A stretch of DNA of 63,756 nucleotides. Origin: Asterias rubens. Lineage: Eukaryota. The DNA is taken from positions 2,914,001-2,977,756 of the forward strand of contig NC_047072.1 of NCBI RefSeq assembly GCF_902459465.1. Direction: 5' to 3'. The notes below the pieces were generated by a model. It ran no database searches and was not told the origin of the DNA. It saw only the letters and a list, made by a program, of their open reading frames with translations. Position numbers and translations under genes: made by a program. This document shows, one piece after another, positions 29,516-41,189 of this stretch. Positions within the stretch are counted from its first letter, which is position 1, and each line of letters opens with the position of its first letter.

Positions 29516-29892
29516 ATAAATGTTATCGAGTAATAAGTATGTAGGTATGGGAGGTTGAGTGCTTCTTACGAACTGACTAAGTTTGGAGTCAGATGTGCGG
29601 GTGACGAACAAAACAATTTATTCTACTTTCATCGTTTTGGAGGATTGTTGTACACTAGCGGGATGCCGCGCTTCGCGCGGCAACCGAAGTGTAGCGTTGT
29701 GTACAGGCGACGGTAAAAGTGGCTGGGCAGGGTCACAATACAAATTACTGTGGCAAACCACCCATCCAAAGTTAAGACGAATCTTAGTGCTTTGTGAAAT
29801 CATATATTTGTCCGTATTTTTTCCGTTGCGGGATTGATCACCCCCCCCCCCCCCTTCAGTTTAATATTTTCCTGTCCTATGTCCCATATATA

Positions 29893-30823
29893 TGTGACAA
29901 GTAGAATAATTCACATCCGGGTACTTTTCATTTATTCATACTGACCTTTTTAAATACACCGGTTAGCGCGCCCTCATCGGCCGCAAGACGTCAGAGGGCC
30001 ACTCTTTCCTTTGACGGCGGAGACTTAACATCACATTATTTTCTCCGTCTTCAATTCAGGTAATTAGCATTCTATTTTCCATCCATTCTCCCCTAGATTT
30101 CATATAAATTCCTCTTGTATAAATTATTCGTAGAGTTTAGCCTATTTTATGACATGTTTCTTTTTGACAAGAGAACGGTTTTCTAGAGTTAATTTACTTA
30201 GTGTTTAGTCGGGAAAGGAAACTCCCGTTATAGATATATTTCTTTTGGATTTGAATATCCTCAAGTCTCCTCTCTTAGATTTTGTTTCTAGTTCTGCATT
30301 ACTAGAGATCTAAAGTAATGCTGTACTTGTTTTCTGATTTAATGATGTAAATATTGCTGATTTTGCGGAGTTATCCTCTAATTTTGGTACAATTCCAAGA
30401 TGGCGGACGCCATTAAACTTTTGGCGGGAACTTTAATTATATTATTTAGTTTGCCGTTATTTATGCTTTTCTGTTTGCCATCCATTTCCAATCTTTGGCA
30501 AATCGTTTATTATAGATAGTCTTTATCCAAGTTCACGGATTATTTCATTTATTTGTTTATTCTAAAATACATAATTTCTAGGCTGGAAAACAGCAACACT
30601 CTCGCGTCTTTTAAGGATTTCCTAATTAATTGTAAATAGTATTTGTGACTGTAAGTTTTATTCTAAATGTTCTATTTAAAGTATGTTTATTTAATTAGAC
30701 TCTTTCCTTTGACGTCGGAGACTTAACATCACATTATTTTCTCCGTCTTCAATTCAGATATAAATAAAAGTCTGGAACAGCGAAGATTGTGTCCCACAGG
30801 ATCCTTTATTTAAGCCGGTCACA
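29893..30823 (+). repeat. 5' LTR (931 bp)
   Basis: TGTGACAAG...CCGGTCACA; by eye differs from the 3' LTR only by one T indel near 30552. Confidence 0.95.
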
Positions 30824-30825
30824 AA

Positions 30826-30836
30826 TGGTGGAGAAT
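30826..30836 (+). promoter_or_regulatory. Primer binding site, probably tRNA-Ala
   Basis: TGGTGGAGAAT 2 nt after the LTR; complementary to the ...ATTCTCCACCA 3' end of eukaryotic tRNA-Ala (recalled). Confidence 0.75.
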
Positions 30837-32070
30837 CCGGTCTGCGGAAACTACACTTACATCTTCGCTGCAAGAAATCCACTTCACTGATGAGCTGTAT
30901 AGACTTCAACAAGAATCTACTGGTCCTACCCATGGTTTGACACCCTACCCATGGTTGGACATCTTTGGCCATGGTTGGACATATTCGCTACCCACCCCCA
31001 CCGGACAACAGACGCTGAAGAAACCTTGATCGTCGTGTGCACCGTCGTTTGAGGCCCAGTCTTCACGTCCCTTATTTTGCGGGTAGCTTCCTCCATTGCC
31101 GAGATCCTGAACCCCCCTGATGAAACAGTAGCCCAGCCTTGAACAACTGCTTCCTGAAACTCGGTAGCATTTTCATCACAAGTCAAGAGACATTAACAAT
31201 TGTTCACCGTCGGGTCTTCAACAACGGCCGAAATACCTCTCCATTTATTTTTGAACGACAAGGAAATCGGGACACTAAGATAATCACCGTGACGTCTTTA
31301 AACGATCGGGAAAACCTCACCATAGACTTCTTCGAACAGTAAGGAAAACACTACAATAGGCAATCACCGTCGGTCTTAACAATCCGTCGGAATGCCTCCC
31401 CATGGACTTCTCTCTGAACAATGAGGAAACCTGAACAATCCTACTCAACTGTTTAAAGTTGAAAGGAAAGACTCATGTGCTTGAACGGGTAAATCACTGT
31501 ATTAACAAACAAAACAGGTGTATTTTAAATTCCAGAGTATTTATAGATTCTTTGAAGTTGTATTATTGTGTAATCCCCATGAGTTTAGCTACTGAAGAAT
31601 TTGTGCTTTTGTCAGATCACTTGTTTGCAAAACACTTTCATTGTATAGATTTGCTTTAAGTTCACTCACCTTTGTATTTCTATTGAGTTTGCGTTCCATT
31701 GACAGCTTGCAGCTCCATTATAGTTTTGTTTTTCTAGAACTACGAGAATTTTGGTTGCGAGTCCAAAAAAGTACAAATTTCGGTGTGAAGCATCAAAGTT
31801 TGTCTTGAGCGCCAGAAAGTCAATTGCTGCGTACGATTTTATGCTAGCCCTGGCTTGTGCTGCATAAAATTGGGTGAAGATATATATACGTTTTGTTTTG
31901 CATTTTTTTAATCACCTGCCTTTTTGAATTTGCATATCGTGTTCAATCCAGATGTGTTTTGATTTGCGATGCTAATGGTTGATTTTTGACGCATTTTCAG
32001 AAACTGAATAGCAGTGTGAATTTCTATTGTTGTTTGTAATAACAAATTTCAGGTCAACTTTGTTCTAGTC

Positions 32071-33507: not shown

Positions 33508-36500
33508 GCCCTTCTGCATCTGTAAAACCTCAACTAGCCCATTTCAAGCCAGAATACCAGAAGCTGATTGGACCACAAAATGAAGAGACAATCAAGATAC
33601 ATGGAACAAAGTGCAGAGCTCTCATCGACTCAGGATCACAGATCACATCCATCACATCCGACTTATGGAAGTCCCACCCGAGCCTTAGAAACCTAGAACT
33701 GACAACAGCTGACGTAATCATAGAAGGAGCAAGTGGATCGGCAGTTCCGTACCTGGGTGTAATTCCTATCACCTTAGAAGCTATGGGGTTCATCTACCAA
33801 GACGTACCTGCATTTGTTGTGCCTACCGATCCCTACAGAGCACAGGTTCCACTCCTTATAGGTACTAACGTGATACGAGCATCCAAGAAAGATCAACAAC
33901 AAGAAAGAGGTCAATCCTTCATGAAACTTGTACAGGAAGAGAGTAAAGCCTGGCACACAGCCTACGTCAATTTATCTTCTTCAAATCAGGACAGCCAAAG
34001 CGGAAAGATGGGATATGCTATGTATACTGGAAGCCACTCCCGATGCATCCCCGCTGGAGAAGAAGTTGATGTCATGTGCCAAGCTCCACCAAATCCAGCA
34101 GGCGGCTCTTACACGGCTATCATCGAAGGTGCCCAAAACAACCGCGCATCTTGTCTGAGAATTGGCTGCACTGTAACTGACATCGGTCCTGACCGTCAAC
34201 TCCCGGTCAGGGTACACAACATCTCTTCCAAACCAATCTCCATCAGAAGAAACTGCAATCTGGCACAAGTTTCGTATGTCCTCGCTGTTGAAGATACGAC
34301 ACCAACTCTTCATCCAACTACCACTCCTCTCCTTCATGGCGGGCCGGCTGGTAGAGTGAACTCCATCTCATCCATTATTTTGGATGAACTGATTCCATCA
34401 CTCGACTTAGCCAGTTCTGCCTTGCAAGATGACATGAACAAGAAGAAGCTCGCTGATCTCCTTCATAAGCATAACAGCATCTTCTCCAAAGACTCTCTAG
34501 ATTTTGGCTGTACATCTACTGTGAAGCACTGCATACCACTCGTCGACAATAGACCAATCAAACTTCCGTACAGACGCATACCACCGAGTCAGTACCAAGC
34601 TGTCAGGGAGCACTTGAAAGGCATGGAGCAGACCGAAGTCATTCGATGAAGCAGCAGCCCGTACGCCTCCCCATTGGTCATTTCGCACAAGAAAGACGGT
34701 TCTCTCAGGATCTGCATCGATTACAGGAAGCTCAACAGCAAGACCATTCTTGACGCCTACCCACTCCCAAGGATAGAAGAAGCCCCCGACGCTCTTGGTA
34801 ACGCCTCTATCTTCACAACCCTTGACTCAACGTCAGGCTACTGGCAAGTAGAAATGGACAAAAAGGACAAAGCAAAGACCGCGTTTACCACTCCGATGGG
34901 TCTCTACGAATGCAACCGCATGCCATTCGGTCTCCAGAACGCTCCTGCTACTTTCCAGCGCCTAATGACGATGTGCCTCGGTGAGCTGAATTACTCAACT
35001 TGTTTGCTCTACCTCGACGACATCATCGTCTTTTCATCCACATTTGACGAGCATATTGAGCGCTTGGATCAGGTCTTCACGTGTCTCCTTCAACATGGAC
35101 TGAAACTCAAGCCTCAAAAGTGCCACTTACTCCAGTCAGAAGTCAAGTATCTGGGACACATCGTCTCTTCGAAAGGTGTGTCCACTGACCCTGAAAAGAT
35201 CGAACAGGTACGGGAATGGCCAACTCCAACCACTCACAAAGAACTACGAAGCTTCCTAGGGTTCACTGGGTACTACCGTCGCTACGTGAACGGCTATGCG
35301 AAGATAGTTGCACCACTGTACAAGCTCACGGCAGGCAACCCGACACGACGAAAAGGAAAACAGGCACCTACCAAACCACCCCCTTATATCTGGACAAAAG
35401 AGACACAAGCATCGTTTGACCAGCTGAAACAAGTGATGATTTCAGCCCCCATCCTCGGTTACGCTGACTACAAGAAGCCTTTTCTTCTTCAAACCGATGC
35501 TTCTGGTGTTGGGCTTGGAGCGGTCCTCAGTCAGATCCAAGATGGACAAGAACGCGTCATAGCCTACGCCAGCAGAGGTTTAAATCCAGCAGAGTCGAGA
35601 TATCCAGCACACAAGCTAGAATTCCTGGCAATGAAATGGGCAGTAACGGATAAGTTTAGAGACTACCTTCTCGGCAGTACTTTCACTGTGTACACCGACA
35701 ACAATCCGTTACTCTACGTCACCACCACAGCTAAGTTGGACGCAACAGGCCAACGGTGGGTTGCTGCCCTTTCTCAGTTCTCCTTCACTGTGAAGTATAA
35801 ACCTGGTAAGAACAACGCAGTCGCAGATGCTCTCTCCAGAAAACAACACCCAGTTCCATACTCTACGTCAGTCTCCTTCACAACACAACCTGCTGATGAT
35901 GTCCCAAAACCCCTCTCCTTCACAACAGAGATTCCAACCGATGTGGTCAATGCCATATGTACTGGTCACCCCAATACAGGCCAACTCTTCATAGAGCCCG
36001 CAAACTGTCAAGTCACAACCAGAGGACAGGCAAAGCTTCTCAATCCCAAACCAGTAACCAATGAGACAGACGAAATGCCAAGGCTAACTACCAAGCAAAT
36101 TGCCCTTGCACAACGTGATGATCCAGATATATCACGAGTCCTATTCTTCCTCGAACACGGTCAGAAACCAAATCAACAACAGCGAAGCAGAGAGACAACT
36201 GAATGTAAGATCTACTTCAGACAGTGGGACAAGCTAAGTCTTAAAGAAAACATCCTCTACAGAGTTCGTAAGACAACCGACGACACACTCTCACACCAAC
36301 TTCTCCTTCCTAAGTGTTACCGAGCAACAGCCATGTCCGGTCTACACGATGACATTGGCCATCTGGGTTTTGAACGAACGCTAGATATGATCCGTAACAG
36401 GTTCTTCTGGCCCAGAATGGCTAAAGATGTCAAAGACTGGTGTGTGAAGTGTAAACGTTGTTGTCTTCGAAAAACATCTCCTTCAAAAGTCAAAGCTCCA

Positions 36501-37511
36501 CTCGTCTCCATCTTCAGTACAGAACCCCTTGAGCTCATCTGCATCGATTACCTCAAACTAGAACGGAGCGAAGGTGGTTTCGAAAACGTACTTGTCATCA
36601 CAGACCACTTTACCAAGTACGCTCAGGCATTTGCGTCACGAGACCAGAAAGCGGAAACAGTAGCAAAAATACTTTGGGAGAACTTCATCTTACATTATGG
36701 CTTCCCTACTCGCATACACTCCGACCAAGGCCGAAATTTCGAAAGCCAGCTCATCCAGGAATTGTGCAAGGTCTCTGGCATAAAGAAGAGCAGAACAACA
36801 CCGTACCACCCTCAAGGAAACGGCGTTACGGAGAGGTTCAACTCTACTCTCCTTAACATGTTGGGCACACTGGAAGAGGAACAAAAGAGAGATTGGAAGA
36901 AGTATGTGGGCGTCATGACGCATGCGTACAACGCGACGCGTCACGACACCACGGGGTACGCACCATTCTTTTTGATGTTCGGACGCCATCCCAACTTGCC
37001 GATAGACCTCTTGTTTGGTTGCCACTCACCAACTGATGAAGCGCCAGAGTATGACGAGTACGTGGAAGAGTTCAGAGAAAGATTACTGTTTTCATATGAC
37101 CAAGCCAACAAAACTTCACATCACGCAAAAGCCAAACAGAAACGCATCTATGACAAGAAAACCCAAGAAGCCCCACTCCGAGCAGGCGATCGAGTCCTTG
37201 TGCAAGTGAAACACTTCGAAGGAACACACAAATTAGCAGACCGATGGGAATCTAACCCCTACACGGTCGTCACCAAACACGAAAACATTCCTGTCTACAA
37301 GGTACGCTCACTAGGGGATGGAAAGGAGAGAACAGTACACAGAAACCTTCTCACCCCGTGTATGTTCTTCCCCATGTCTTCTTCAGAAAACTCTCCTTCA
37401 GAAAACTTTTCTTCAGCCACGTCTCCTTCATCAGACAGAGAAGAGAAACTGGAGAGAGGGAGGCAGTTGTTGGCAGTATGGAAGAGTCGCCAGATGACTA
37501 GAACAAAGTAG
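33450..37511 (+). pseudogene. pol: Gypsy Pol (protease, RT, RNase H, integrase) with one in-frame TGA at 34647-34649
   Basis: ALIDSGSQIT protease; YLDD at 35010-35021; QTDASGVGLGAVL RNase H; HHCC zinc finger and D-D-E (ICIDY, HSDQG, VTERFN); ORFs 33783 and 34674 are in the same frame. Confidence 0.93.
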
Positions 37512-37912: not shown

Positions 37913-37926
37913 AAAGCAGGGGAGGA
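37913..37926 (+). promoter_or_regulatory. Polypurine tract
   Basis: AAAGCAGGGGAGGA immediately before the 3' LTR. Confidence 0.85.
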
Positions 37927-38856
37927 TGTGACAAGTAGAATAATTCACATCCGGGTACTTTTCATTTATTCATACTGACCTTTTTAAATACACCGGTTAG
38001 CGCGCCCTCATCGGCCGCAAGACGTCAGAGGGCCACTCTTTCCTTTGACGGCGGAGACTTAACATCACATTATTTTCTCCGTCTTCAATTCAGGTAATTA
38101 GCATTCTATTTTCCATCCATTCTCCCCTAGATTTCATATAAATTCCTCTTGTATAAATTATTCGTAGAGTTTAGCCTATTTTATGACATGTTTCTTTTTG
38201 ACAAGAGAACGGTTTTCTAGAGTTAATTTACTTAGTGTTTAGTCGGGAAAGGAAACTCCCGTTATAGATATATTTCTTTTGGATTTGAATATCCTCAAGT
38301 CTCCTCTCTTAGATTTTGTTTCTAGTTCTGCATTACTAGAGATCTAAAGTAATGCTGTACTTGTTTTCTGATTTAATGATGTAAATATTGCTGATTTTGC
38401 GGAGTTATCCTCTAATTTTGGTACAATTCCAAGATGGCGGACGCCATTAAACTTTTGGCGGGAACTTTAATTATATTATTTAGTTTGCCGTTATTTATGC
38501 TTTTCTGTTTGCCATCCATTTCCAATCTTTGGCAAATCGTTTATTATAGATAGTCTTTATCCAAGTTCACGGATTATTTCATTTATTGTTTATTCTAAAA
38601 TACATAATTTCTAGGCTGGAAAACAGCAACACTCTCGCGTCTTTTAAGGATTTCCTAATTAATTGTAAATAGTATTTGTGACTGTAAGTTTTATTCTAAA
38701 TGTTCTATTTAAAGTATGTTTATTTAATTAGACTCTTTCCTTTGACGTCGGAGACTTAACATCACATTATTTTCTCCGTCTTCAATTCAGATATAAATAA
38801 AAGTCTGGAACAGCGAAGATTGTGTCCCACAGGATCCTTTATTTAAGCCGGTCACA
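37927..38856 (+). repeat. 3' LTR (930 bp)
   Basis: Copy of the 5' LTR. Confidence 0.95.
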
Positions 38857-39099
38857 TATATTATGATAGTCCCTTTTTGGTTTTTTGGGGTTTTTTCAAT
38901 CCATACCCCAGCCATGTTCATTTTCCCCGGACCGTAATTTTATGTTTGCCGTTCCCCAGTCCCCCGTTCCACAGCCGTACCCCTTTGTGCCCCTTCCTAC
39001 TGTCCCCGTCCCTAATCTAACTCGTGCCTCCTTCCCGTCATACCGCCCGTGAATTGTTCTTTGCACTTTTTGCCGGCCCATTAGGGATTTGACTCATTG

Positions 39100-39916: not shown

Positions 39917-40560
39917 ATGTGGTCTCTAATCACCTGTCTTTGTAGCATTGAGTGGAAGTTCTTGTGCCTGGACTGTGGTGTTAAAGAAGAGACCGATGTC
40001 ATCAGCAAAGTCAAGGTCGGGCATGGCTACTACGGGATAGAGACTCGATCTCCTTGGCATCAATGTGAATCAAAGATCCACCTTGTGTCTGCCGATAGAT
40101 CGTCTGAGGGCGAAGTCACTGATGAAAATGAATTGAGGGGAGGGTATCCCCTTCATGACTTCTGCCAAGATCACTGCACAATGGTCCATATCCCCGACCC
40201 TCGCATCCTTCCTCACTGTGTTTGTTGAATGTAGCCATAATGAGCGGCCTCCTGTATCGCAGATCGCATTGGACTTTGGACTGTCGTCGGATGAACTCCT
40301 CCGGGAAGGGGGGTGGGGGCAATGCCATTCTGTCAGGCCAAGACCTGGCCAGCACACCTGTCTGCATCATCGATCCTGTCCACTCTCGGGACTTGAAGTA
40401 AATGCTTTGCCATTGGATTTACCATTAGCTTCCTTTAAAGGCTATAATAAGACTTGGGGGCACCACTCCTCTCAGGACTACCCTGGTTGCTGCCCTTGTC
40501 CGCACTAGGATGTGAACGTACGTTAGTTACGTAACGAGCTCTACCTGCAAAACGGAGTTT
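39917..40560 (-). mobile_element. RTE-like LINE 5' part (AP endonuclease N-terminus, frameshifted)
   Basis: RPLIMATFN/NTVRKDARV..HC resembles the APE start of RTE-clade elements (recalled). Confidence 0.55.
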
Positions 40561-40564
40561 GCAG

Positions 40565-40990
40565 TCAGAGAGGTCCTTCTCCTAGGTATACTACCAATCT
40601 AGGCTGAGAAGTTCTACCTACTCTGGATGGTGATCAGAGAGGTCCTTCTCCTAGGTAGACTACCAATCTAGGCTTACGTGTTCTACCAACCCGGGATGGT
40701 GGTCAGGGAGGTCCTTCTCCTAGGTATACTACCAATCTAGGCTGAGAAGTTCTACCAACCCGGGATGGTGACCAGAGAGGTCCTTATCCCTGGTAGACCA
40801 CCAATCTAGACTTAGGAGTTCTACCTACCCAGAATGGTGGTCAGGGAGGTCCTTATCCTAGGTAGACTACCAATCTAGGCTTATAGGAATTCTACCTACC
40901 TACGATGGTCAAAGAGGTCCTTCTCTTAGGTATACTAGCAATCTAGGCTTACGGGTTCTACCAACCCGGAAGTGTGATCAGAGTTTTTCT
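40565..40990. repeat. ~61-bp tandem array x7 abutting the LINE 5' end
   Basis: CAGAGAGGTCCTTCTCCTAGGTAGACTACCAATCTAGGCT..GTTCTACC unit. Confidence 0.92.
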
Positions 40991-41189
40991 TCTCCTAGGT
41001 GGCCTGTCTACATAGCTGACGAGCCTAACCTGCTCGGAATGATCTGGTTTTTCGGCACCATTTAAAATTGCCTATTACACTTCTGCCAATCAGTTTAAAA
41101 CAGGGTTTGGCGCATCAAACCAAGCAGTAGGAGTCTGTTTAGAAGAGGATAGTTTTCCTGGGTTTGTCTTTACTGTGGTTGCAAAAACT

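Follow-up and report, generated by a model that had tools for sequence, protein, structure and literature searches.

A repeat-flanked, intron-like stretch inside the LTRs of a young Ty3/Gypsy element of the starfish Asterias rubens

Canonical Ty3/Gypsy (Metaviridae) retrotransposons carry long terminal repeats (LTRs) with a U3-R-U5 layout, and retroelements normally lose introns because they pass through spliced RNA. Some retroviruses (HTLV-1/BLV, foamy viruses) have their major splice donor inside R, downstream of the start site, but the acceptors lie far downstream, outside the LTR, and there is neither an intron wholly inside the LTR nor a flanking direct repeat. In engineered split-intron retroviral vectors (Ismail et al. 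2000, as described in PMC3182074), reverse transcription is used to place a splice site such that an intron exists in the integrated copy, giving spliced, better-expressed RNA; here the donor is copied from the 3' LTR to the 5' LTR, the acceptor lies outside the LTR, and no repeat serves as a landing site. Two further processes generate or resolve direct repeats. Introns can be created by duplication of an AGGT-containing segment, which leaves direct repeats at both intron ends and a single copy after splicing, but this requires adjacent tandem copies and a single event. In retroviruses, template switching by reverse transcriptase deletes one of two direct repeats together with the intervening DNA, which can account for LTRs that have lost such a segment, but not for GT/AG signals at the repeat edges or for long-term retention of the segment. 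Full-text literature searches found no description of an LTR-internal intron flanked by repeats.

The complete element described here resembles the canonical type in its TG...CA LTRs, 4-bp target duplication, a primer-binding site (PBS) 2 nt after the LTR, a polypurine tract, a gag with a CCHC knuckle, and a pol in the order RT, RNase H, integrase. By contrast, its proposed R is interrupted in the DNA by a 639-bp module, and a second, uninterrupted copy of the first 59 nt of R lies at the end of this module.

Anatomy of the LTR

The window analyzed comprises 63,756 nt of A. rubens DNA (GCF_902459465.1, contig NC_047072.1, positions 2,914,001 to 2,977,756, forward strand), and all positions given below refer to it. 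An earlier note, made from the sequence alone, had described a 698-bp intron-like module bounded by a 59-bp direct repeat in each LTR, with a donor after copy 1, an acceptor at the end of copy 2 just before AATAAA, and YY1- and E2F-type motifs within the module. This observation is confirmed. The 59-mer occurs exactly four times in the window, without any reverse-strand copy: the two first copies (r1) are identical to each other, and the two second copies (r2) differ from them by one mismatch (G/T at unit position 17). r2 ends in TTCAATTCAG and is followed by ATATAAATAAAAG, which leads into the only AATAAA of the LTR, 5 nt after r2. Removal of 30060-30757 would leave an LTR of 233 bp. Coordinates are collected in Table 1 (a slash marks a boundary).

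Table 1. Features of the element, all on the plus strand
Positions	Feature	Observations
29889-29892	Target-site duplication TATA, 5' copy	3' copy at 38857-38860; flanks read ...ATATA/LTR and LTR/TATAT...
29893-30823	5' LTR, 931 bp, TGTGAC...GGTCACA	Matches the 3' LTR with one 1-nt indel at LTR position ~662 and no substitutions
29893-30000	Region A, proposed U3, 108 bp	AGCGCGCCCTCA at 29965-29976, GACGTCA at 29987-29993, initiator-like CCA/CTCT at its 3' edge; promoter role inferred
30001-30059	r1, proposed exon 1 and first part of R	Folds into a stem-loop (hairpin z = -3.2)
30060-30065	Donor-like GTAATT	Context CAG/GTAATT; GT kept in 31/31 family LTRs
30060-30698	Unique module M, 639 bp, body of the proposed intron	Present in every LTR of the family that reaches this region
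30395-30406	YY1-type motif CCAAGATGGCGG	
30419-30430	E2F-like TTTTGGCGGGAA	Noted in this family
30699-30757	r2, proposed 3' end of the intron and uninterrupted copy of R	Branch-like CTTAAC, pyrimidine tract, CAG; 76% pyrimidines in the 25 nt before the AG, against 58% in M
30763-30768	AATAAA, proposed poly(A) signal, used in the 3' LTR	CA about 11 nt on; TTGTGT at 30787-30792
30758-30823	Start of proposed exon 2 (end of R) plus U5	R/U5 border inferred
30826-30840	PBS TGGTGGAGAATCCGG	Without an identified tRNA match; same or near-identical PBS after the LTR in loci L039, L052 and L086
32071-33507	gag, 478 aa	PNMA-like capsid region below the Pfam cut-off; CCHC knuckle (zf-CCHC)
33783-37511	pro-pol frame	RVT_1 (residues 5-164), RT_RNaseH (240-369), Integrase_H2C2 (546-601), rve (616-713)
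34647-34649	In-frame TGA cutting the pro-pol frame in this copy	Four other genomic copies have a continuous 1355-aa frame
37913-37926	Polypurine tract AAAGCAGGGGAGGA	
37927-38856	3' LTR, 930 bp	
38035-38093	r1 of the 3' LTR	
38094-38731	Module of the 3' LTR	
38732-38790	r2 of the 3' LTR	
40545-41000	Array of 69-bp tandem repeats just downstream of the element	Units 78-87% alike

A search of the genome with the LTR found 30 full-length copies at 95-100% identity, one at 88%, and several truncated ones. All 31 full-length LTRs carry r1, the module and r2, and all keep GT after r1. r1 and r2 are identical (59/59) in 19 of the 31; the rest differ by private changes, and the G in r1 of the window copy is private to this element and present in both of its LTRs. 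The existence of short-LTR relatives had been named beforehand as a test of the intron reading, and the two proposed exons were searched separately. Every hit of region A plus r1 that reaches the end of r1 (36 LTRs) continues into the module, and every hit of the stretch from r2 to the LTR end is preceded by the module in the full-LTR alignments; no 233-bp LTR was found in this family among the best 40 candidates scored.

Related families and concerted evolution of the repeat

A Pol search of the genome gave six further families with the same layout, named here by their Pol identity to the window element, with L numbers designating the loci read. The Pol-78% family has a 59-bp repeat with a start-to-start spacing of about 706, GTAATG after r1, and AATAAA 9 nt after r2, then GGTCACA and the same PBS. 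The Pol-66% family (L039) has 54 bp, a spacing of 531, GTAATA after r1 and GAAATAAAA after r2. The Pol-52% family (L045; 164 bp, spacing 1256, CTCTAG/GTGAGT), the Pol-51% family (L046; 153 bp, spacing 995, GTAAGC) and the Pol-47% family (94 bp, spacing 1079, GTATGT) have no canonical signal after r2. In the Pol-46% family (L041; 75 bp, spacing 900, GTATGT) there is none either, and AATAAA lies just before r2. LTR borders were confirmed for three of these families from the extents of genomic hits. Gag relatives on contigs of other assemblies add three more: L052 (NCBI GCA_014845345.1; 61 bp, GTAATT, AATAAA 11 nt after r2, PBS TGGTGGAAGATCC), L060 (GCA_002003405.1; 23 bp, TAG/GTAAGC, ATTAAA 5 nt after r2) and L061 (ENA ERZ28620936; about 30 bp, AAG/GTAAGC, AATAAA about 28 nt after r2). 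Two other contigs reached by protein look-up (P0001 and P0002) end 834 and 373 nt upstream of gag and do not reach the LTR. In four sampled families (L040, L047, L048 and L049) no repeat was found in the 2.2-3.7 kb fetched, which, the extents of their LTRs being undefined, is not evidence of absence.

In all ten families, including that of the window, r1 is followed by GT(A/G) and the repeat ends in AG (CAG in seven, TAG in two, AAG in one), the two copies being separated by unique sequence throughout. The 25 nt before this AG are 68-76% pyrimidine in eight of nine scored families, against 52-60% in the modules. In L061 a long pyrimidine tract, and in L060 branch-point-like CTAAC and CTGAC, lie in the module just before r2, where these acceptor-type signals are independent of the duplication. 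The LTR DNA is otherwise unalignable between families, and that of the more distant families does not align with that of the window element at all. Since the families share ancestry, this is conservation under selection rather than ten coincidences, but it is still strong evidence that the two edges act as splice sites, although splicing itself is inferred from DNA sequence alone.

The repeat unit is not conserved as such. It differs by about 30% (by eye) between the Pol-66% family and that of the window, and at 8 or more positions between an older subfamily of the latter (subfamily B; L031, L032 and L034) and the main one, and in each case both r1 and r2 carry the states of their own lineage. 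Yet within every family r1 and r2 match at 98-100%, for example 153/153, 94/94 and 75/75. A single ancient duplication followed by independent decay cannot give this pattern of concerted evolution; something re-copies one unit onto the other during the life cycle of the element. Two LTRs on different chromosomes (L027 and L028) do share a variant in r1 only, which would need a special pedigree if overwriting were obligatory.

Precise module-less LTRs (region A, r, downstream part) exist in three sister families, as checked by sequence for the Pol-52% and Pol-51% families and for four solo LTRs of the Pol-78% family, three of which have clear 4-bp target duplications. The latter family has a 59-nt repeat, which ruled out the idea that short LTRs appear only when the repeat is long (153-170 bp). 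In the Pol-52% family there are elements with two short LTRs, and one element (C13:16185219-16194153) with a full 5' LTR and a module-less 3' LTR whose shared parts are identical; the loss probably arose during reverse transcription rather than long after insertion. On a tree of 10 long and 7 short LTRs of this family, built from two alignment blocks of natural copies set side by side, the short ones are scattered singletons (5 changes, of which only 2 are forced by well-supported branches). In the Pol-78% family, however, two short solo LTRs share a variant of r, so short forms may sometimes spread. Splicing of the 3' copy, template switching by reverse transcriptase and DNA recombination all give the same collapsed product; the short forms thus confirm the relatives predicted by the earlier note, but do not prove splicing. 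An odd insertion in the Pol-78% family (L089; C4:11545600-11546120, minus strand), flanked by the target duplication GGTA, consists of a module-less LTR followed by 13 nt resembling the end of the module, a partial r (from about position 19) and a second copy of the LTR tail, and looks like an aberrant reverse-transcription product. Two further copies of this family (L043:1251-1655 on C60 and L044:1237-1641 on C15) share a large insertion in the LTR module that begins with about 7.5 tandem 54-bp units; r2 of the C60 copy lies about 12 kb further on, and the expected 5' LTR region of that copy (L038) gave no match.

A proposed intron within R

The best reading, to which we assign a probability of about 0.5, is that this very young element carries a spliceosomal-type intron inside the R region of its LTR. 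In this view transcription starts at the first base of r1 (30001), r1 is exon 1, the intron runs from the GT at 30060 to the AG that ends r2 (30757), and exon 2 starts with the AATAAA region. The cap-proximal intron would be spliced in the 5' LTR, so that the RNA begins with r1 plus exon 2, whereas at the 3' LTR the RNA would be polyadenylated about 20 nt after r2 with its module retained. Minus-strand strong-stop cDNA, the complement of r1, the exon-2 start and U5, would then find a contiguous landing site of about 80 nt on r2 plus exon-2 start at the 3' end of the RNA, and be extended through the module, r1 and U3. Every progeny LTR would thus regain the intron, and r2 would be overwritten by a copy of r1 in each such cycle, serving as both the acceptor region of the intron and an uninterrupted R. 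Overwriting need not be obligatory, as occasional use of spliced templates would already homogenize the copies, and mis-landing on r1, double splicing or repeat deletion would give the short LTRs. What the sequences themselves establish is the anatomy, its conservation in about ten families, the concerted evolution of r1 and r2, the promoter-like context at the 5' edge of r1 and the existence of precise module-less LTRs in sister families; the start site, the splicing, its 5'/3' asymmetry, the poly(A) site and the strand-transfer step are all inferred. The model explains why the repeat begins at a start-site-like position, why it ends exactly at YAG/GT, why r2 must carry acceptor signals, why r1 and r2 evolve in concert, and why the module survives retrotransposition.

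The 5' edge of the repeat in its r1 context reads like an initiator and coincides with an initiator-like YYA in most families: CCA/CTCT in the window, TCA/T in two families (L039 and F78) and CCA/TACT in the Pol-47% family, although the match is imperfect in L052 and L045. In the Pol-51% family this edge lies 30-31 nt after TATAT and about 75 nt after CCAAT. The base before r1 is C. The base before r2 is G in six families including that of the window, which would fit copying of the cap, but may simply be inherited. The motif AGCGCC(C/T)(C/T)C recurs 30-50 nt upstream of r1 in several families (the window, L039, L052, L043 and L048, twice in L048; upstream of copy 1 in three related families), and in the Pol-78% family it reads AGCGCCCCCAGCGGTGG, which resembles a CTCF-type site. 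AATAAA or ATTAAA lies 3-29 nt after r2 in six of ten families, whereas four families show no canonical signal there; in the window the following CA and TTGTGT make a good poly(A) context. r folds into a hairpin whose 3' arm covers the pyrimidine tract, with z from -2.5 to -3.2 in five families including that of the window, as R hairpins do in retroviruses. Covariation in this hairpin did not hold up: one compensatory pair was found between families (GGAGA with TCTCC against GAAGA with TCTTC), but subfamily B has an uncompensated A·C, and only the fold z-scores are therefore claimed.

Several points weigh against this reading. It rests on no RNA evidence at all, the GT/AG signals are conserved characters rather than independent events, and the CAG at the end of r2 follows automatically from duplicating a donor-flanking exon end. 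Why the 5' copy of the intron would be spliced and the 3' copy not is argued only from general principles: cap-proximal donors are favored, the terminal exon would be about 20 nt with AATAAA 5 nt from the acceptor, and the donor in the 3' LTR has no upstream acceptor or cap. The YY1-type motif, in the sense orientation, could mark a start site inside the module. Somewhat more tentatively, a whole clade of deuterostome Ty3/Gypsy elements, found in this starfish and on contigs of other assemblies, may keep an intron inside the LTR through retrotransposition, with a retro-copied exon 1 at the 3' end of the intron serving as both splice acceptor and landing site for strong-stop cDNA. This would be a natural counterpart of split-intron vectors and a new twist on the U3-R-U5 scheme. 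An LTR that keeps an intron, and the regulatory DNA inside it, by means of a built-in duplicate of exon 1 would be a new solution to the loss of introns by retroelements and to the problem of ignoring the poly(A) signal in the 5' LTR. It would also change how such LTRs are annotated, both in their U3/R/U5 borders and in 'internal repeats' now treated as noise, would explain the recurrent short-LTR derivatives, and offers a natural model for intron-carrying retroviral vectors.

Alternative explanations

The alternative that survives best, although unlikely, is that there is no splicing. The module would then simply be U3 enhancer/promoter DNA, and r1 and r2 a cis-acting repeat, for example a U1-binding site that damps the nearby poly(A) signal plus a structured R-like unit, kept alike by frequent template switching or by DNA recombination between the copies, with the module-less LTRs as ordinary direct-repeat deletions. 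Such deletion during reverse transcription is well established for retroviruses and gives exactly the collapsed LTRs seen, including the element with a long 5' and a short 3' LTR at zero divergence, which splicing alone does not explain, and the terminal CAG of r2 would be a by-product of duplicating the donor context. However, unequal switching deletes or duplicates the module rather than converting one copy into the other, and this view explains neither the acceptor-type signals in the modules of the short-repeat families L060 and L061, nor the coincidence of the repeat boundary with YAG/GTR, reported for all ten families.

The interpretation given in the earlier note is only partly supported. 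The intron itself is supported by its sequence signals: the predicted donor (CAG/GTAATT) and acceptor (CTTAAC, pyrimidine tract, CAG) are present, and the same signals are conserved in nine other families. Intron gain by duplication is not supported, as the copies are not tandem and are kept identical over time, which a one-off duplication does not explain. Nor is the inference that the promoter lies inside the intron, so that splicing in the 3' LTR would yield promoter-less, self-inactivating short-LTR progeny or separate mRNA from genomic RNA. In this less likely model the start lies near the YY1-type motif or at r2, U3 comprises region A, r1 and the module, R begins in the module or at r2, and the GT after r1 is used only in the 3' LTR part of the RNA. 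It draws some support from the conserved YY1-type motif, from AT-rich, TATA-like strings before r2, and from the scattered module-less singletons of the Pol-52% family, as expected if losing the module ends a lineage. It gives no reason, however, for r1 and r2 to stay identical while diverging between families. The YY1-type motif (AAGATGGCG) lies 322-341 nt after the end of r1 (382-396 nt after its first base) in four families, although the surrounding module is hardly alignable, while its distance to r2 varies from 94 to 302 nt; this fits an intronic enhancer as well as a promoter. Sequence context favors a start at r1, since it is the r1 edge, not the r2 edge, that has the TATA(-30)/CCAAT/initiator context. 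No short LTR was seen among 36 in this family, and the shared variant in two short solo LTRs of the Pol-78% family hints that short forms can spread.

Two related readings were considered and rejected. A start site at r2 driven by the TATTTAAAG string about 25 nt upstream is at odds with the variable position of the TATA-like strings, which lie at -9 to -28 in different families. An internal U3 duplication with TATAAATA after r2 as the TATA box was dropped because the CA plus GU-rich context fits a poly(A) site and R would be under about 10 nt. Finally, a chance repeat or an assembly artifact is refuted by the presence of the same repeat in both LTRs and in 31 full-length LTR copies on many chromosomes, and of analogous repeats in assemblies of other organisms.
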